64,000 bases of DNA from Epithemia pelagica (GCA_946965045.2 OX337230.1:620001-684000); one strand, 5' to 3'. Counted from the first letter of the stretch, positions 2 to 14,486 are shown. Numbers and translations: made by a program. Notes: generated from the letters alone by a model not told the origin.

Positions 2-3000
2 ATTTGTGTCCGGGGACCACCCCTCTTTGGAGGATATGCCCCCGTGTGGACGAGCAATAGTAGTAATGACACGTCGTCGTCGAATCCATTGTCGCGTCGT
101 GGCGACGATTGCTTGTTGCCCGGCGGGTGGTTTGATACGGGCGATTTGGGCTATCTCGATGCCGACGGTTACTTGTACATTACCGGACGGTCCAAGGAAG
201 TCATTAATCGAGGGGGTGAAATTATCTCCCCCCTCGAAGTCGAAGAAGCCTGCATGGCCCATCCCGACATTGACACGGCCGTGGCCTTTGCCGCCCAACA
301 TGACGTGTTGCAAGAAGTCGTGGCCCTGGTCGTCGTACCGGCGACCACCACCACCAATAACAATACCAAGACGCAACCATTGTCCACCAGCACGACAACC
401 ACGAGACGGATCCCCAAAAAGATTGATTTACCAGGCTTGCATGCCTTTTTGGGTCAAGGTCGATTGGCGGCGCCCAAATGGCCCCAATGTTTGGTGTACA
501 TGGATGCCGTTCCCAAATCCCATACCAACAAATTGTTACGGGTCAAGCTGGGAGAACGATTGAAATTGCCACAATTCCATGATTCCATGTATCCCATTGA
601 ACGAACCTTTCAAGCCACTTGTCCGCCCCTGGGCACACCCCTGTCGGTACCCATCCCGTGTCAACCCGTCACGGTCCATCCACAAACCGTACAAGATATT
701 TTGCAACACGAATTTGTCAATCAACTACCACCCCTTCCTGCATCATCATCATCTCCTTCCACTCGAGAATTGGCAGTGACACTGCATCCCCTCAAATTGG
801 GTCATTTGGTCGTCCATGTCTACAACATTCATCGAATGGAGGTCATTGAAGCTGCGCAAGAATTGCTCGATGCCTATACGATGCCCAGTCATGTTTGCAC
901 CTTAACGGCACCCGTGGCCCATTCGGACCTGACACGAATCATACCGGAACCCTCCGATGCGGTCGCCAGTATTTTGCAACAAGCCATGGGACAAGGACCG
1001 ACAGCGGATCCGTTGGTTTCCAATTTACAACAAGTCTTTCAAGACTTGTTGGATTTGGATTGTCAACCGGCACCCGATACCAACTTTTTTCATTTGGGTG
1101 GATCGTCCATGATGGCCTCACAACTGGCGAGCAAGATACGAAAGATTCATAATGTGGCCTTTGGTGGTGCCGAAGTCTTTCATCATCCCAATTGTTCCGC
1201 CATTGCGGATGTGATTCGCGAACGACGAGGCGAAATTGGCATGAAGCGCTCCCTCTCGTCTGTTACCAACAACGCAAGCATCCGAGACAAGGCGAGTTTG
1301 GCGGCCTCGTCCCTCTTTTCGCAAAAGCTCAACTTGGATGGCGTCAAATTCGATTCTACACGGATCCATGTCGAACCAGACTGGAAAGTGCACCTGTTGC
1401 AACTTCTCCCACTCTTTGTCATTCATCCCTTGTGGCAATTGACGCGGTTCTTTATGTTTTTCCAAACCTTGCTAGTAGTACTGAAACGAGTTCCCAATGA
1501 AGACAATCTTGTGGCCTTTGTCATAACGCTGGTTACCTTTCATTTCATTTGGATTGTCATCACTCCGCTGGTATTTGTGGCCATCAAATGGATCGTCATT
1601 GGCAAGTACAAAGCGGGGCGGTATCCAATTTGGGGCGAATACTACATGAGATGGTGGTTTGTCGATATATTGCGCAAAATGATTGGACTTGGCTTTTATG
1701 GGAGCAGTGAGGCACTGTTGCGAGAGTACTACCGCTGGTGTGGTGCCACGATTGGAACGGGGGCACGAATTTCCGTGTCCGCCGACATTGCCGAATTTGA
1801 TTTGGTTCACATTGGAGAGGAAGCCGCAATCGACTTTAGCGTTGTTCGAGGCTTTGCAGTGGACAGTGGCTGTGCTCTGTTGGGACCCGTTACGGTGGGA
1901 AATCACGCAAGTGTGAGCATTCGGGCCATTGTTGCGCCCCATACCTCCATTCCAGACCACACACATCTCAGTCCAGGGGGCACAAGCTACGAAATCCACG
2001 CCGGCGAACCAGGACAAGACATTCAACATCTCCGTTACAATCGATATGCCATGCCAGGCCCGAATTTTTGGTATGCGACTTTCATTACGGCACCCATTGT
2101 GACCTTGGTCGAATATTTGTCCCATATTCCGGCCTTGGCCATCTTTTGGTACATGGTTCAGCAACCGTGGCGATCCAATCACGAGCCATTTGATTCCATA
2201 CCCGACTTGATGCAATGGCTTTGTGATCCAAGGAGAATACCATACTACATTTGTATACGGATTGCACGAGCCATTGGGGCTCCAGTGGTTCACATGCTTC
2301 TTGCCGTCCTCATCAAGAGGCTGATCATTGGCAAGTTTCGTCCCGGACCACGTGACACCACATCCAATTGGCAATTGGTTCGACATCAACTGGCCAGTAA
2401 ACTTTTTACCCGGGAAAAGATGAATGACTTTACCGAATTGATTGGTCGTCACTATGAACTGGTCAGTGTTCTGTACCGGTGTCTGGGTGCCAAGGTGGGG
2501 AAACGCGTCTTTTGGCCTGGTCAACAACCGGTCTTTTCCGGTGAATTTGATTTGCTCGAAATTGGAGACGATGTCGTGTTTGGATCTCGATCCGCCATTT
2601 ATTGCAGTACAATCGATTCCTGTGACCGTGTCGTGTTGTGTGCCGGTTCCAACATGGCGGACAATACAGTCGTCTTGCCGGGATCGATTTTGGGCAAGAA
2701 TGCCGTTTTGGGATCCAATGCCATTTGTCCTCAAAACCGGTACCTTTCCGAAGGGAGTATTTGGTTTGGTGCACGATGTGGAGAGCCAGTCTTGTTGGGG
2801 AAGGGTGTGGACGATCAAATGAGTATGGACTCGAGCAATGTGAGCAAGGACCATATTCCACTACAAGGAGATGACAGCACGATCCGGCCTTTTGGCCGGG
2901 CCTTTTACCAAAGTGCGGCCTCCTATTTTGTTGTGCCCATTCCCTTGATTCTGCTGTATACATTCTTTACCAAGGTCCTGATTGCGGCCATTCAAACCAT

Positions 3001-3919
3001 GCCGATTTTGGGTGCCCTCTATTTGTCGGCTGGTATTTTGTTTGGCTTTGATACTGTGGTGGATGATTACGACAGTTACAGACTGTCCTTGTGGGGCCTG
3101 TACAGTACCATGGGATGGGCCATGTTGCTAGCCAATGCTAGTTTTCTCCTCTGCTGGCTCACGATTGAAGTCTCCGCCAAATGGATCTTTATGGGTCGTC
3201 GCCAGGAGGGGACCTTTAGCTGGGACACCTCGACTTATTCGCAGAATTGGGAATTTTATCAATTGGCCTGTCGCATCCGGTCCATGGGACGAAGTACGGT
3301 CTTGGACTTTTTATCGGGCACGTCGTGGCTGGCCTGGTTTTTTCGATTGCTCGGTGCCAAGATTGGATCCAATTGTTGTTTGTATCCCAGTCGTGCCGAT
3401 TTGATCATGACGGAACCCGACTTGGTTGCCATGGGAGACCGTGTGGTATTGGATTGTGCCCATGTCGTGGCACATTTGAATACGCGAGGCAATTTTGAAT
3501 TGAAACGCATCGAATTGGAATCCAATGTCACGTTACGGAATAGTAGTCGTGTCCAACAAGGCGTCCGGATGGAGACGGGGTCCATGTTGTTGGAAAAGGC
3601 CTTGGTCTTGACCGGTGAAGTGGTGGAAGCAGACAGTATCTGGATTGGTGCACCCGCCTCACGATTGTCGTCGTCATCCTCGTCGGAAACGAGTAGTTTG
3701 GGATCGCGTCCGTCTCTACAAGACATGGGGGCTGCGGAAACGGGACCCTCCCCTTCCAGGAATGCGTCGTCCTCCCTACGGATACCACCATACAATGCGA
3801 ATAGTACCAATGCCACTGGAAGGAATCGTGGTGGCAATGACCCAGTTGTGCAAATTGTAGGCCTGGCCAACCATAAAGGATTGGGAGAAAATGGATTGGA
3901 AGGTTTTGTCCTTGTATAA
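2..3919 (+). CDS. NRPS-like membrane-bound synthetase (A-domain C-terminal half + carrier protein + three TM/left-handed beta-helix units; Pls/TIGR02353-like C-terminus); 5' end lies outside the window
   Basis: Frame is open from base 2 (ICVRGPPLFGGY). Adenylation motifs: TGDLGYLDADGYLYITGRSKEVINRGGE and PKSHTNKLLR. Carrier-protein motif DTNFFHLGGSSMMASQL, Ser near 1103. Three repeats of hydrophobic segment + KW/KR-xx-GK/GR + GAxIG/GAKVG hexapeptide stretches. Confidence 0.85.
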   Translation: MCVRGPPLFGGYAPVWTSNSSNDTSSSNPLSRRGDDCLLPGGWFDTGDLGYLDADGYLYITGRSKEVINRGGEIISPLEVEEACMAHPDIDTAVAFAAQHDVLQEVVALVVVPATTTTNNNTKTQPLSTSTTTTRRIPKKIDLPGLHAFLGQGRLAAPKWPQCLVYMDAVPKSHTNKLLRVKLGERLKLPQFHDSMYPIERTFQATCPPLGTPLSVPIPCQPVTVHPQTVQDILQHEFVNQLPPLPASSSSPSTRELAVTLHPLKLGHLVVHVYNIHRMEVIEAAQELLDAYTMPSHVCTLTAPVAHSDLTRIIPEPSDAVASILQQAMGQGPTADPLVSNLQQVFQDLLDLDCQPAPDTNFFHLGGSSMMASQLASKIRKIHNVAFGGAEVFHHPNCSAIADVIRERRGEIGMKRSLSSVTNNASIRDKASLAASSLFSQKLNLDGVKFDSTRIHVEPDWKVHLLQLLPLFVIHPLWQLTRFFMFFQTLLVVLKRVPNEDNLVAFVITLVTFHFIWIVITPLVFVAIKWIVIGKYKAGRYPIWGEYYMRWWFVDILRKMIGLGFYGSSEALLREYYRWCGATIGTGARISVSADIAEFDLVHIGEEAAIDFSVVRGFAVDSGCALLGPVTVGNHASVSIRAIVAPHTSIPDHTHLSPGGTSYEIHAGEPGQDIQHLRYNRYAMPGPNFWYATFITAPIVTLVEYLSHIPALAIFWYMVQQPWRSNHEPFDSIPDLMQWLCDPRRIPYYICIRIARAIGAPVVHMLLAVLIKRLIIGKFRPGPRDTTSNWQLVRHQLASKLFTREKMNDFTELIGRHYELVSVLYRCLGAKVGKRVFWPGQQPVFSGEFDLLEIGDDVVFGSRSAIYCSTIDSCDRVVLCAGSNMADNTVVLPGSILGKNAVLGSNAICPQNRYLSEGSIWFGARCGEPVLLGKGVDDQMSMDSSNVSKDHIPLQGDDSTIRPFGRAFYQSAASYFVVPIPLILLYTFFTKVLIAAIQTMPILGALYLSAGILFGFDTVVDDYDSYRLSLWGLYSTMGWAMLLANASFLLCWLTIEVSAKWIFMGRRQEGTFSWDTSTYSQNWEFYQLACRIRSMGRSTVLDFLSGTSWLAWFFRLLGAKIGSNCCLYPSRADLIMTEPDLVAMGDRVVLDCAHVVAHLNTRGNFELKRIELESNVTLRNSSRVQQGVRMETGSMLLEKALVLTGEVVEADSIWIGAPASRLSSSSSSETSSLGSRPSLQDMGAAETGPSPSRNASSSLRIPPYNANSTNATGRNRGGNDPVVQIVGLANHKGLGENGLEGFVLV

Positions 3920-6210: not shown

Positions 6211-8985
6211 ATGTGGATTGACTTGTCGTCGCCCTTTTTCTTGTCCACCGTGGCCTTGGCATCTGTCGTCTTGGTCTATGGCTATTTGGTCACTTCCGTC
6301 TTGCCCTATTCAGGCTTTTTGGTTCTGGCCTTGTTTCAGGAACCATCACACAACAATAACCACGAGTCGTCGACCACCACTACAACAACCACCATTACCG
6401 AAGAAACGGTGGGATATTATGCCGGTTGGATTACCAGTAGTTTCATGGTGGGACGAGCCTTGACCTCGTATGGCTGGAGCAAGGCGGCCAATGTGCATGG
6501 ACGGACCCGTATTTTGGTGTGGAGTTTGGCCTTGTCGGTCGTGTTGTCGCTCGGCTTTGGACTGTCCACCACCTTTGCCATGGCACTCCTCTTGCGATTT
6601 GGACTGTACGTGTATGTTGGTTGTGTTTGGGCCTCTGAGAGAGAGAGAGAGAGAAAACAAAGAGACTCGGCAAGAATTCTCCATGGCTCTACCAAAGAAT
6701 CAATCCATGGAATCATCTCTTTTGAAATGTGAATCTAACAGTTCTGTCTTTCGATTACTCTAATATACAGTGGATTGAGCAACGGATTGATTGGAACGGC
6801 CAAGACGGGTACGTGGATTCACTTTTTTGGGCTGCTTGGACAATGATGACACTCACCAAACAAACTATATATCCCTTGCTTATCTATCTATCCACCAACA
6901 GTCTTGACGGAAATTGCGGGAGGAGACGAAATTCGAGAATCGCGCAGTGTCGGTGTGTGTATGAGCATGTATGGATGGGCCTTGTTGTTTAGTCCCATGG
7001 TATCCGGTCTCTTGGCCGATCCCTTGCGACAATATCCCTTTTTGGTTCCGTCGGAATCAACGTGGTATTATGCTCTGTTGCAACGATTCCCCTTTGTGTT
7101 GCCCAATGTGGTGGCCGCCATTGTTTGTCTGGGATCTTTGATTCTCGTCCACTGCTTGGTTCCCGAAACCTTGGTGCGTCCCCCTCCCACTCAACCATCA
7201 CCACAGTCAACAAAAACCACAACCACATCTTCTCGATCGGTAACCTCCCTTGTTTGCCAATGGTGGAAGGCCGTCTGGGGACAATCCACCCAACAAGACA
7301 CTGGGACGAATCATTCAAACAAGGAAGAACAAGATCTCCTATCACCCATTGTCAATCCTCCACAACCAACAACAAAATCATCATCATCGTCATCCTTGGC
7401 AGTGTCTGCGACGCAGCAACCCCACACTGGGAATCAATCCCCAAACAACAACGACGACGACGACATGCCAAGCCTTTATGGAACTCTTGGTACCACCGAC
7501 GACCACCAACGAAAATCACTGACATCCACTCGTATCGACACAAAGGATTCGTACCACACCAAGACGGATCCTCTCCGCCGTGGGGCTTCGGCATCCTCCT
7601 CCTCGGAAACATCCCTCACCAATCTGCAATTGCCTCAAGACATTGTCTTGTTGGCAGCCCAAACCGATATTCAGACAGCCCTTCGGGCTTCGGTACAAGC
7701 CTTTCATGTGGAAGAAGGATCTCTCATGTCGTCCATTCAGTATCGACAACGATTGTCGGCGGCCTTGGTCAAACGACGAACCACCCTCCTGGCCGCGGCC
7801 GCTCAGACACAACCACAACCAACGGCATCTCATACAGAATCGGATACCAATGGTACTAGGGAATCAACATGGAACAACAACACGACCACACCATCCACAA
7901 GGAACAATGAAATTGCTCCCCCATCCACCGACAGGGCGCCCAACAGTGGAGATATGGCAGAGTCCAACACAGAAACTGAAGCCACGATTGCGTCGTTGTG
8001 GGCCATGAAAGCCACACGGCGGCAACTCATTGTATTTTGGTAAGCTTGCGTGTTGGACTGGTTTCGGGTCGAGGTTCCAAAGGCTCTGGAGTGCGTCTGT
8101 CCTAGAATCTCGTAGTGTATCTCGAATGTGCACTCTCTCATATGCGTGAATCCATGTCTCGATTTCTACCACAGGTTGGGAACCTTTTTTATGCATTCCG
8201 TCGATGAGAGCATTCCCTTGTTTCTCATGTCTCGCAAAGGTGGTTTGGGCTTATCGGCCGTGGCCATTGGGACAGTCTTGTCCTTGTCGGGTGGCATTTT
8301 TGTTAAATTGCAGTACTTTGTCTATGCCTATCTGGTGGATGTCTATGGATTGTATGGGTCCATGAAAGTGGGGACCCTCGGGATGTGGCCCTTGATTGCC
8401 TTGATCCCCCTAGTACTCTTTCTCAATGAGACTGGGTCCATGGTCGACCTCACCTCCAATGTCGAAGCCGCCGTCTTTCATCGGAACAAAGAGACAACAA
8501 TCAACACGACGACGACTACAATCAATGACACATCTGAAACTCTGTCCTCCCCTTCCATGATTCATGTGGAGGGTCAAACGATTGCGGGGACACACTTTCA
8601 CAACAACAACAATGACGGCCACAACGAATATGGACATTTAACCTGGGCGGCCTTGATTTATTTGACGCTCGTACTCTCCGTGTCACGCATGTGTTCCTTT
8701 ACCTTTCTGTCCTCCTTGGTGGTAACCATGAATCGATCCGTCCCCAATCCGTCCCATCGAGGAGCCATGAATGGATTTTGTACCATGGGTGCCAGTGTGG
8801 CCAAAGCCTTGGGACCACCCTTTGCCGGATTGCTCGTGGCATTTTGCCTTTCGGCGGGTGTCTTCTCCACACCCTCGGCGGGTGCCATTGTCATGTTTGT
8901 GGCGTTGGCAAGTTTGGGCGGTCTCACCGCCCTTGGTGTGACGCTCCTCCTTCGCGAAGAGACGGCAAAGAATGGATCCTTGTAA
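6211..8985 (+). CDS. MFS transporter, ZIFL/TOM1-like; 4 exons (6211-6605, 6771-6808, 6902-8039, 8174-8985)
   Basis: GYYAGWITSSFMVGR, splice-joined GLGLSNGLIGTAKTVLTEI, SPMVSGLLADP, RFPFVLPNVV, GAMNG..GASVAKALGPPFAG. All three GT..AG introns keep the frame. Confidence 0.85.
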
Positions 8986-11475: not shown

Positions 11476-12500
11476 TGTCAATCTCGTCGTGTCCTTGTTC
11501 TTGTTGTGGTGGTGGCGGTTGGCTCGGTGGAGACAGGATGATGGATGATGGGTCCACCCATTCTCTCACGACAGAAGATCCGGTGCTTTTGGAGGAGGAG
11601 CTTCCTGGTGGTTCCTTTCCATTCTGGAATGGTATAATCTTACATCATCATCATTCTTCTTCTTGGTAGGATGATTTCATCTCTCCTTCCCCATTCATTG
11701 ATCTTTAGAAAAAATGAATGCGTGGAAAATGACGTCATCTCAGCGATCCAAACGCGATCCAGTTGGTCGCGTTTGATACCAGCCCGCGCCCAAACGCGCG
11801 GGCCCATCCAAAACATCCGCAAGCCCTGCTCTCCATATCGGCACGAAAATGGGAGGGAAGGTTTCGTCCCCATCCCATTGTCATCGTTCCAACAACACAT
11901 CTTTCTCGGTGGTTGTCAAACAAACCGATTGTGTGTCCAATCATCTCTTCGTTATCACTCCCTTGCTCTTATCTATTGTTGTCCTCTCTAGAAACTGTCG
12001 GTGTTCCTGCTTCTATAAGGTTTGTTTCGTGAATCTCCCTCCCATTTGGCTCTTCTCTATACATCGAGAGAGAAAAAAGAGGTGCCCCACAGCAAACACT
12101 ATCATCGTCTTTCCCACTCCCAGCAGCACGCACGGTTCGTGTGGGTGGCCCTCTTTCTTTTGGAGTGCGTGTATACGAGCCTTTTTGCGGACGGCAGGTT
12201 TCATTCCAACGTGGTGTATCATACGATCGACTCGAAACCAGCACCTTTTTTTTTCCTCGCTCAAGACCCGTTCGAGTCCTTTGAGAATCCCCTGCAACGG
12301 ATTGCTCGTTTGGACCAGACACGCACACACACACAAGACGAACGTTCCAGTCAATTTGGTCGACCAAGCATTTTAGAACGACGCTGTTCTGGATTCTGGA
12401 ACGTGTTGCAGTTCCCAACAGGGCACCCTTTTGACCACACCACACAAGTGGTTTGGACGACAACAACAACGACGACGACAAGTCCACTCTTGATACCAGT

Positions 12501-14486
12501 ATGTATACTCGAACCGAGTTGCCGATTGCCGGCACGGACGATGTCCCTGACAATGATTGGTTGTCCTTCTTGTCATCCTGCACGACAACGACAGGAACAA
12601 CAACAACCATAACTCCTCCACCGCTGTCGTCTTTGCAACGCGCCTTGCACGACATGGAAGAAAGTTTGCGATGTACCATTTGTCGCGATCTCTTTACCAT
12701 TCCCGTCAGTGTCCGTCCCTGCCATCATTCCTTTTGCAGTGAATGCATTCGCAAATGCTTGGCCGAATACCAACGCACGCGCTTTTCGCAAAAATCCGCC
12801 TGTCCGCTCTGTCGAACGCCCCTGCTCGTGGGTGGCGGCAAGGATGTCTCCAAATGCCTGACCGCCAATCATGCCCTCGAAGACACGATTCGACACTATC
12901 GACGGGTTCGACCCTTGTTGCGACACACATTGGCCGTATCGGCCGCCACCACAACAGTAGTAGCAGCGGCAGCAACCACAACGGACGAGGCCAATCAGGA
13001 TCCTTCCGCTGACACGAAACGCAAGGCGGCAGCAGCACCCAACGATTCGACCACCACCACAGCGACCTCCACCACCACCCAGAATGACACCGTGGAGGAC
13101 CCGAATTCCTCCGATTCGGCGGCTGCTCCTACGAATACCTTGCAACGCCGCCGCACGTACATGTACAGTCATTACAAGAAGCGCAAACAATTGCAAGACT
13201 TGTGTCGGGCCGAAGGCTTGAGCACGGCCGGCACCGACGTTCAACTCCGCGACCGCCATGCCGCCTTTTGTCTCAAGGTCAATGCCGAATGCGACAGTCG
13301 GCGGCCGCGCACCCTTGACGAACTCCGCCGGGAATTCAATCGACACGAACACGCCAAGCAAACTCAATCCATGCAATGGGAACACGAGTCGACCGAATCC
13401 ATGATGCGAACCTTGTATGAAACGCGCAAACAAGCGGGGTCGACCCAGGATGGCGGTACATCGACCAAGACAACAACGCGAATCACGACGGGCAATGCCC
13501 AAATGGATCACACCATGAACCAAAATTTTGCCGCCATGATTCAACAACTGCGGGCGGCGAAACAAAAAAACAAAAAGCAACAACAACAACAACCCAAACC
13601 ACAGGAAACGAGCGAGGGGAACTCGAAATCATCCTCCCCCAATGAGGAGGAGGACGGGAACGAATCCTCCACCAAAAGTCCGACAGTGGCCGCAGTGCCA
13701 TTGAAACCGGACAAACCGAGCAACCACGAGGCACTCGAACCAAGATCCGAAAAGGGGATGACTGCGGACCCGGTGGAGGGAAAACTCGACGTGAGCAAGG
13801 CACAAAACGAGGACGAGGAAGATGATGATGATTATAGTGACACGGATGCATCCGAAATTCAAAGACTGGAACAGGAAGTAGAGGGTTTCCCCGACATGTT
13901 TGCCGAATTTAGGTTGGACGAATTGAAACAAGCCAAGAAGGAGCGACGAGAAGAACGCCGACGATTGCGCCTCGCGGGCCAATCCATGACGACAACCACT
14001 ACTCCGATTGGTTCCAAGAGGAGTACAGTGCCATTGTCCTCCACATCGTCGTTGCCCGTGGCGGTCGTGACTGGTTCCTGTCAGAAATCCACGTCGGCCG
14101 ATCGCAAACACGCACGATCTTACGAAACCAGTGCCGATCGACCCGAACCCATGGCTGCCTTGGAGAACGACGACGAGTCGGTCCAAGTCGTTCAACCTCC
14201 ACCACGCGAAACAGCCGCCACCACGACGACCTTGGAGTCCTTTTTCCCCAACAAACGCCGTCGCACATCCAAGAGCAGTAGTCATTCTTCCAAGAACAGC
14301 CGCAAATCGTCGAATGCTGGCCCTTGGACGTGTCCCTCGTGTACCTATCGCAATGACAAGCCCCTCTACCTGTCGGCCACGGCCAAGTGTGAAATGTGTG
14401 AACGTCGCCGACCGCCACCTCCCATTGTGGCTCCTGCTCCTGCTTCTGTCACCAGTACTACGACCGCCACGTCGATCCATCAGTAA
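12501..14486 (+). CDS. RAD18: RAD18-like E3 ubiquitin ligase (RING-HC + SAP-like + C-terminal RanBP2-type Zn finger)
   Basis: LRCTICRDLFTIPVSVRPCHHSFCSECIR..CPLCR; SAP-like KQLQDLCRAEGLSTAGTDVQLRDRH..FCLKVNAECDS; WTCPSCTYRN..CEMC. Confidence 0.75.
   Translation: MYTRTELPIAGTDDVPDNDWLSFLSSCTTTTGTTTTITPPPLSSLQRALHDMEESLRCTICRDLFTIPVSVRPCHHSFCSECIRKCLAEYQRTRFSQKSACPLCRTPLLVGGGKDVSKCLTANHALEDTIRHYRRVRPLLRHTLAVSAATTTVVAAAATTTDEANQDPSADTKRKAAAAPNDSTTTTATSTTTQNDTVEDPNSSDSAAAPTNTLQRRRTYMYSHYKKRKQLQDLCRAEGLSTAGTDVQLRDRHAAFCLKVNAECDSRRPRTLDELRREFNRHEHAKQTQSMQWEHESTESMMRTLYETRKQAGSTQDGGTSTKTTTRITTGNAQMDHTMNQNFAAMIQQLRAAKQKNKKQQQQQPKPQETSEGNSKSSSPNEEEDGNESSTKSPTVAAVPLKPDKPSNHEALEPRSEKGMTADPVEGKLDVSKAQNEDEEDDDDYSDTDASEIQRLEQEVEGFPDMFAEFRLDELKQAKKERREERRRLRLAGQSMTTTTTPIGSKRSTVPLSSTSSLPVAVVTGSCQKSTSADRKHARSYETSADRPEPMAALENDDESVQVVQPPPRETAATTTTLESFFPNKRRRTSKSSSHSSKNSRKSSNAGPWTCPSCTYRNDKPLYLSATAKCEMCERRRPPPPIVAPAPASVTSTTTATSIHQ

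Follow-up and report, generated by a model that had tools for sequence, protein, structure and literature searches.

What does a diatom make with an enzyme that joins an acyl-activating domain to a membrane part resembling that of a bacterial polyamide synthetase? The question is raised by the gene that opens a 64,000-nucleotide stretch of the Epithemia pelagica genome (OX337230.1:620001-684000, here G000:C3:620001-684000; hereafter the window). A first-pass annotation, made from the DNA alone, had described positions 2 to 3919 as a diatom membrane-bound enzyme of the nonribosomal peptide synthetase (NRPS)-like kind, with the architecture of Pls, the epsilon-poly-lysine synthetase of Streptomyces, and had guessed that it either makes a polyamide or polyester or transfers acyl groups. 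The reading that we favor, at a probability of about one half, falls within that guess: the gene would encode a single-polypeptide membrane polyester synthetase, most likely using malate, in a subfamily that appears to contain the polymalate synthetase (PMAs) of the fungus Aureobasidium.

The annotated interval proved to be a genuine open reading frame (ORF), but one that does not lie wholly inside the window. Positions 2-3919, read in frame from position 2, are the 3' two-thirds of the synthetase ORF, and most of its adenylation (A) domain is upstream. No stop codon interrupts the frame over a further 1.9 kb before the window start. Retrieval of this 5' part, as the annotation had advised, placed the first ATG at G000:C3:618295 (L003:1795), 1705 bases before window position 1, and recovered the full product of 1874 amino acids (aa). 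The complete gene (G000:C3:618295-623919) has no intron and consists of one unbroken ORF, with its stop codon at window 3917-3919. All the motifs that the annotation had quoted are present in frame from position 2.

The protein begins with the A domain, continues with a carrier (T) domain and ends with six membrane helices interleaved with three left-handed beta-helix (LbH) units. In a Pfam scan of the full protein, we found AMP-binding (E 2e-45, split by inserts), AMP-binding_C, PP-binding (E 3.5e-10) and weak Hexapep matches; the same scan found no thioesterase (TE) domain. The NCBIfam model TIGR02353, which describes the terminal domain of Pls and of the delta-poly-L-ornithine synthetase PosA, matched three stretches of the C-terminal part (E 7e-66), with a score of 223 bits that does not reach the curated cut-off of 423.1 bits. 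The three hidden Markov models (HMMs) proposed by the annotation, AMP-binding, PP-binding and TIGR02353, thus all matched. Its Pls-like layout, with A and T domains followed by three modules of membrane helices and LbH, held in HMM, solved-structure and fold tests, and the C-terminal units do align with Pls, a point on which it had staked its case. The synthetase is a single-copy gene, the remaining TIGR02353 matches in the genome being weak beta-helix ones. The genome also contains two phosphopantetheinyl transferase (PPTase; PF01648) genes.

An alignment of the C-terminal region (n = 45) was used to build an AlphaFold2 model of residues 1003-1790 (m00b8c02939b6; mean pLDDT 89.2, pTM 0.88); neither the folded nor the aligned region included the Ser-rich tail. 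Six helices of about 33 residues each form three pairs in the model, with a beta-helix unit after each pair. The region of helix pair 1 corresponds to TIGR02353 positions 2-328. Within soluble unit 1, Asp1169 is kept in 51 of 53 sequences, while soluble unit 2 has weak Pfam Hexapep and Hexapep_2 matches at residues 1423-1477 and a local similarity to the LbH of gamma-carbonic anhydrase (E 1.7e-5). Two residues of soluble unit 3, Glu1707 and His1727, are unchanged in all 53 of these sequences, canonical Pls included, and are the best candidates for catalytic residues. The whole architecture is absent among solved proteins, where a sequence search gave local beta-helix matches only; Foldseek against the PDB retrieved only small hexapeptide (LbH) O- and N-acyltransferases. 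Motifs rich in Lys and Arg follow helices 2, 4 and 6 (KWIVIGKYKAGR, KRLIIGKFRPG and KWIFMGRRQEG), and by the positive-inside rule they would place the three beta-helix units in the cytosol, presumably together with the A and T domains, which have to supply them.

Which substrate might the A domain activate? Its best NCBIfam match is the FadD7 family, followed by other acyl-CoA ligases, and the amino-acid adenylation model TIGR01733 scored 88 bits against a cut-off of 317. Among solved structures, the top three relatives are the oxalate-CoA ligases 5ie0 (Arabidopsis AAE3, E 7e-42), 6qjz (grass pea) and 8aff (yeast Pcs60), which together span E 7e-42 to 2e-33; the next structural class, 4-coumarate-CoA ligase, follows at E 1.6e-20. 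The gate residue His and motifs A3, A5, A7, A8 and A10 are common to the synthetase and AAE3/Pcs60. Judged by these matches, the A domain is of the acyl-CoA-ligase type.

The oxalate pocket of AAE3 comprises Val215-His216, Cys288-Ser289, Ala313-Met314, His319 and Lys500, and we take the catalytic role of the A10 lysine from the same source (PMC8905533). In an HMMER alignment, the equivalent positions of the diatom protein are Val362-Gly363, Ala485-Ala486, Gly521-Met522, Pro527 and Lys746. The oxalate-contacting residues Ser289 and His319 of the Arabidopsis enzyme (AtAAE3) are replaced by Ala486 and Pro527. Across 93 full-length diatom homologues, little or no variation is seen at these two positions, at the other pocket residues, in motifs A3, A5, A7, A8 and A10, or at the carrier Ser938. 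His216 and Ala313 both become Gly, which suggests a larger pocket. Val362 occupies what we take to be the A4-motif position of the alpha-amino-binding Asp in amino-acid A domains. None of the eight mapped positions is acidic, and the pattern of an amino-acid-type pocket, Asp plus acidic residues to hold a diamino acid, is absent. We rejected oxalate as the substrate on the replacement of both oxalate-specific AAE3 residues. The annotation had likened the tail of the A domain to AAE3-type oxalate-CoA ligases; this is borne out for the type of domain by the three best solved relatives, but does not extend to the substrate, since the loss of the oxalate-specific residues makes oxalate unlikely (PMC8905533). 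Low-complexity inserts rich in Thr, Ser, Gln and Asn interrupt the domain (L003:1795-3500 and window 2-574), for example at residues ~30-130, 270-300, 400-425 and 585-600, and are absent from the fungal and bacterial homologues.

A more specific suggestion for the product came from the fungi. The annotation had mentioned related fungal proteins with A, T and LbH parts; we found them, and they appear to include an enzyme that it did not name, the genetically characterised polymalate synthetase of Aureobasidium, which supplies a concrete product hypothesis. PMAs of A. melanogenum was reportedly described by Wang et al. in 2020. The enzyme of strain ATCC 62921 (QHD40385.1), encoded by a 5049-bp gene, consists of A-like, T and C-like domains, the last with six transmembrane regions, and has been called the key enzyme in the polymerisation of malate to polymalate (PMA) (PMC11286673; see also PMC9210645, PMC11905612). 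It has no TE domain (PMC11286673, PMC9210645). Complete removal and restoration of the gene have been reported (PMC9210645), and the proposed route runs from malyl-AMP through a malyl-S-enzyme to ester formation (PMC11286673, PMC9210645, PMC11905612).

The diatom protein has this PMAs-like layout of A-like domain, T domain and six transmembrane regions with no TE domain. It is collinear with A. melanogenum P0401 (1688 aa) over 1695 columns, at 32% identity and 796 bits, and the two share the order of A-like, T and six-helix C-like parts, the lack of a TE domain or signal peptide, and all core A motifs. Indeed, the positions equivalent to the AAE3 pocket are identical in eight of eight cases (V, G, A, A, G, M, P, K). 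A pocket unchanged against a background identity of about 35% suggests a single shared substrate. The motifs MPLFHVGG, NAAGG and SYGMTECMPI and the A10 Lys are likewise identical in diatoms and Aureobasidium; other fungi, the diplonemid and the bacteria keep them nearly unchanged, some of these having Ala, Ser or Ile in place of the Val. The diatom protein differs from P0401 in being about 190 aa longer, through its Thr/Ser-rich inserts and Ser-rich tail, and in belonging to its own well-supported diatom clade.

Is P0401 the published PMAs? We think it very probably is, on the grounds of organism, architecture, length (~1682 versus 1688 aa) and the smaller size of the other candidates: fungal homologues of amino-acid-type Pls are shorter than 1500 aa (PMC10522769), which leaves the 1688-aa protein as the one that fits. 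A query with a Dothideomycete member retrieved two 90%-identity clusters of Aureobasidium proteins, 1685-1690 aa long, in agreement with the two PMAS homologues reported for A. melanogenum (PMC11286673).

The annotation had spoken of a diatom enzyme. The gene is present in every diatom sampled, but the fusion of A, T and membrane parts is not specific to diatoms: besides the more than 90 diatom proteins that have it, it was found in fungi, a diplonemid and several bacterial phyla. When the C-terminal region was used as the query of a word-seeded search, more than 1100 proteins matched. Among the best 120 of these, at 48-70% identity, the named proteins are all from diatoms (Epithemia, Mayamaea, Seminavis, Nitzschia, Pseudo-nitzschia, Stephanodiscus and Cylindrotheca), the closest being from Epithemia clementina at 70%. 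An exhaustive HMMER search of 1.8 billion representatives gave 2050 matches; of the long ones (at least 1300 aa), 49 were checked, and all except about three also align to the diatom A domain, at ~31-51% identity. Named eukaryotes outside the diatoms that have the fusion are the diplonemid Artemidia, chytrids, Mucoromycota, Basidiomycota and many Ascomycota. A scan of bacterial genomes found it in Novosphingobium, Myxococcota, Planctomycetota and Kitasatospora, with a truncated match in a Dormiibacterota genome.

This subfamily is far from canonical Pls, and the diatom protein is a member of it. Four bacterial proteins and one fungal protein that we scanned pair a FadD7-type A domain with a TIGR02353 match of 166-225 bits. 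One Kitasatospora genome (G001) has both types, which scored 98 bits (FadD7-type) and 806 bits (canonical Pls) in a six-frame TIGR02353 search; because the two occur in one genome, they are distinct paralogous subfamilies. In a maximum-likelihood tree of the C-terminal domain, diatoms, fungi and bacteria each form one group (support 100, 88 and 100), and canonical Pls sits on a very long branch. We rejected membership of canonical Pls on the grounds of a TIGR02353 score below cut-off, an A domain not of the amino-acid type and the separate paralogue in Kitasatospora.

Two fungal paralogues depart from the pattern. In P0197 of Verticillium albo-atrum and P0215 of Epichloe bromicola, the membrane/LbH part is kept and the adenylation motifs are degenerate: A3 reads STNGPWG-KD and FNNSPWLNRE, respectively, and the A5 and A7 motifs are lost. 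These proteins may be inactive, or may be supplied by another enzyme. Subfamily members carry database names that take account of the A domain alone and overlook the membrane polymerase: '7a-methyl-1,5-dioxo-octahydro-1H-inden-4-yl' (Seminavis), 'AMP-binding enzyme', 'Oxalate--CoA ligase', 'peroxisomal-coenzyme A synthetase' and 'acetyl-CoA synthetase-like'; others are labelled 'hypothetical'. For the diatom homologues, the names are either uninformative or mistaken.

Does the E. pelagica gene look functional? Four sequencing runs, DNA-like contig sets from one study, contain it. Of the 40 best-supported substitutions between alleles or strains, 30 are synonymous and 10 non-synonymous, and the indels within the ORF in these contig sets are all multiples of three; a 1-nt indel at L003:1658 lies 5' of the proposed ATG. 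The synthetase gene is under purifying selection. In the MMETSP transcriptomes, the orthologues P0003, P0067 and P0084 have transcripts that are flagged as complete and span the A, T and membrane parts, which implies that the fusion is one mRNA in other diatoms. A single short contig of run X4 skips 147 bases (49 codons, in helix pair 2) at L003:5675-5823 (window 2176-2323). An intron was rejected there, as the ends are CA..CT rather than GT..AG and just 24 letters lie on one side; the skip is probably an assembly artefact or a rare allele. Separately, the E. clementina gene model has a 147-nt intron starting with GT in beta-helix unit 2, after ...YRCLGAK (L029:14386-14533), at a place where the window gene is continuous.

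How might such an enzyme work? The following scheme is drawn by analogy with Pls and PosA (PMC10522769) and with the proposal for PMAs (PMC11286673). The A domain, without alpha-amino recognition, would adenylate a small (hydroxy-di)carboxylic acid, most likely L-malate at its beta-carboxyl, and the acyl group would be passed to the carrier domain, onto the phosphopantetheine attached to Ser938. The beta-helix units, all three of them cytosolic, would pack as a pseudo-trimer on the six-helix membrane bundle, and the His1727/Glu1707 site would drive the attack of an acceptor hydroxyl, belonging to a free monomer or the growing chain, on the thioester. Repeated cycles would produce a polyanionic polyester, poly(beta-malate) or something close to it, that would exit through or along the six-helix bundle. 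The product is likely to be an ester rather than an isopeptide of the Pls type, because the A domain is of the acyl-CoA-ligase type and is without the amino-binding Asp.

The scheme can be set against the known systems on which it draws. With Pls and PosA, the diatom protein shares the A-T-six-helix order, three tandem beta-helix units forming a pseudo-trimer and the Glu/His pair of unit 3 (PMC10522769); it departs from them in its acyl-CoA-ligase type of A domain, which lacks the amino-binding Asp, and in a TIGR02353 score that is half of the cut-off. No solved proteins come closer to the A domain than AAE3/Pcs60 (5ie0, 6qjz, 8aff); these CoA ligases, of 514-543 aa, stand alone, whereas the diatom domain is fused to a carrier and a membrane transferase, so that the acceptor thiol would be that of the fused carrier. 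The best fold matches of the soluble units are LbH acyltransferases: serine, galactoside and maltose O-acetyltransferases, AntD and GlmU. These are soluble homotrimers that use acyl-CoA, and their active sites sit between the subunits of the trimer. The diatom protein, in contrast, has three diverged copies in one chain, a six-helix anchor and a tethered acyl-carrier thioester, and its three fused units appear to mimic the LbH trimer in the manner of the PosA model (PMC10522769). A literature search found no cryo-electron microscopy study of Pls and no publication under TIGR02353.

The main alternative is a single-turnover acyltransferase, dependent on the carrier and not polymerising: a small acid would be loaded, and the beta-helix trimer would pass it once to an acceptor that faces the membrane, for example a lipid head group, a polysaccharide, a protein or a long-chain polyamine. 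The beta-helix units do resemble one-step O- and N-acyltransferases (serine and galactoside acetyltransferases, AntD), the family is widespread in organisms without known polymalate, and the sequence gives no proof of iteration. We nevertheless regard single transfer as unlikely, because the characterised enzymes that combine A and T domains with six transmembrane helices and three LbH units, namely Pls, PosA (PMC10522769) and PMAs (PMC11286673), are all iterative polymerases, and because the Aureobasidium protein has an identical acyl pocket. The same pocket bears on the idea of a Pls-type homopoly(amino acid) synthetase whose product is a secreted polyamide of some unusual amino acid, perhaps a beta- or omega-amino acid that is bound without the canonical Asp. 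An A domain that groups with acyl-CoA ligases, Val at the position of the amino-binding Asp and the absence of acidic residues from the pocket make this quite improbable, as do the TIGR02353 score of half the cut-off and the separation of the subfamily from Pls, as a paralogue in one bacterial genome and across a long tree branch; in its favor are the E value of the C-terminal match to TIGR02353, the Glu/His pair held in common with canonical Pls and the reported eukaryotic homologues of homopolyamide synthetases (PMC10522769).

The likeness to oxalate-CoA ligases could also be taken at face value, as an oxalate-activating AAE3/Pcs60 homologue fused to a transferase and producing oxalyl esters or amides. 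All three of the best solved relatives have that activity, and several fungal members carry the database names 'Oxalate--CoA ligase' or 'peroxisomal-coenzyme A synthetase'; against this, the substitutions at Ala486 and Pro527 and the change of His216 and Ala313 to Gly are invariant in the 93 diatom sequences, and we consider oxalate very unlikely. Scarcely credible, finally, is a decaying or chimeric gene model in which the A-T and membrane parts do not form one functional protein. The lack of RNA data for E. pelagica and the long low-complexity inserts in the A domain might point that way, yet the 1874-codon ORF is uninterrupted with its catalytic motifs all intact, the fusion recurs in 93 full-length diatom proteins, including the complete MMETSP transcripts, and the excess of synonymous differences (30 versus 10) and in-frame indels fit a maintained gene.

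Several observations weigh against the reading of the gene as a malate-using polyester synthetase. According to a review, PMAs has not been isolated (PMC9210645); it is characterised genetically only, and no member of the subfamily has biochemical data. Neither QHD40385.1 nor the name 'PMA synthetase' was found among the listed cluster members or the matches to the Aureobasidium query, and a literature search found nothing that links polymalate with diatoms. The family also occurs in many fungi without known polymalate production. We looked for an RNA run for E. pelagica, and none exists. Gene neighbours, examined in the window, Epithemia and Nitzschia, are uninformative, none being conserved.

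Table 1. Coordinates of the synthetase features and of the two Kitasatospora relatives (window positions unless a contig is named)
Feature	Position	Strand	Evidence or remark
Residues 1-569 and start codon	G000:C3:618295-620000 (L003:1795-3500), outside window		ORF extended upstream
A domain, 3' part (residues 570-760)	2..574	+	Pfam AMP-binding E 2e-45 on full protein
A8 hinge motif GRSKEVINRGGEIISP (residues 631-646)	185..232	+	Near-invariant in 93 diatom homologues; also in fungi and bacteria
A10 lysine Lys746 (aligns with AtAAE3 Lys500)	530..532	+	Invariant in 93 diatom sequences
Carrier (T, PP-binding) domain (residues 911-974)	1025..1216	+	Pfam PP-binding E 3.5e-10
Phosphopantetheine-site Ser938	1106-1108	+	Invariant in 93/93 diatom sequences
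Membrane helix pair 1 (residues 1030-1062, 1069-1101), ends KWIVIGKY...RWW	1382..1597	+	AlphaFold2 helices 28-60, 67-99
Soluble unit 1, left-handed beta-helix (residues ~1108-1237)	1616..2005	+	AlphaFold2; matches C1 part of TIGR02353
Membrane helix pair 2 (residues 1258-1289, 1312-1345), ends KRLIIGKFRPG	2066..2329	+	AlphaFold2 helices 256-287, 310-343
Soluble unit 2, left-handed beta-helix (residues ~1358-1537), motif EFDLLEIGDDVVFGSRS	2366..2905	+	AlphaFold2 secondary structure; Hexapep
Membrane helix pair 3 (residues 1549-1583, 1599-1633), ends KWIFMGRRQEG	2939..3193	+	AlphaFold2 helices 547-581, 597-631
Soluble unit 3, left-handed beta-helix (residues ~1648-1790)	3236..3664	+	TIGR02353 positions 513-695, E 3.8e-21
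Glu1707 (candidate catalytic residue)	3413-3415	+	Invariant in 53/53, including canonical Pls
His1727 (candidate catalytic residue)	3473-3475	+	Invariant in 53/53, including canonical Pls
Ser-rich low-complexity C-terminal tail (residues 1791-1874) and stop	3665..3919	+	Translation
Kitasatospora G001, canonical Pls	L026:2200-6249	-	1350-aa open frame
Kitasatospora G001, FadD7-type relative	L019:3460-8136	+	1559 aa

Around the synthetase, an ORF at window 8128-8985 (+), perhaps together with 6904-8043 (+), weakly resembles the MFS_1 transporter family (E 1.7e-4, which misses the Pfam cut-off). The ORF lies 4 kb downstream of the synthetase and may form part of a transporter gene as one of its exons; we saw nothing that links it to the synthetase. 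At window 12453-14486 (+), an ORF of 677 aa contains a RING-type zinc finger (zf-C3HC4, E 1.7e-7). Upstream of the synthetase, on the opposite strand, an ORF of 1132 aa (L002:3136-6534 (-), C3:613136-616534) has no Pfam match at E <= 0.001.

Enzymes of this kind are already known, PMAs being one of the Pls-like membrane synthetases. To our knowledge, in vitro work has been reported for no member of the subfamily, nor has any algal member been studied. Another diatom NRPS-like enzyme is the subject of a recent paper, which describes the functions of diatom NRPS-like genes as uninvestigated (PMC13194791). In all diatom lineages sampled, the gene is conserved and evolves under purifying selection. 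A bolder proposal, on which we would not bet, is that diatoms as a group use this enzyme to make an unnoticed polyanionic polyester, polymalate or a close analogue, that could act outside the cytosol. Such a polymer could, for example, be an anionic partner of long-chain polyamines and silaffins in silica deposition, or a component of mucilage or of the frustule coat.

If the polyester-synthetase reading is right, a polymer whose only known producers are a slime mould and a few fungi has a ready synthetase in the main silica-forming algae, and an unreported polymer is predicted for a major algal group. It would also mean that a mislabelled subfamily has been identified across bacteria, fungi, diplonemids and diatoms, and that, across kingdoms, monomers other than amino acids are handled by the Pls-type scaffold of membrane polymerases. 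Should diatoms make such a polyester, it would be a new class of biopolymer for diatom cell-wall biology.

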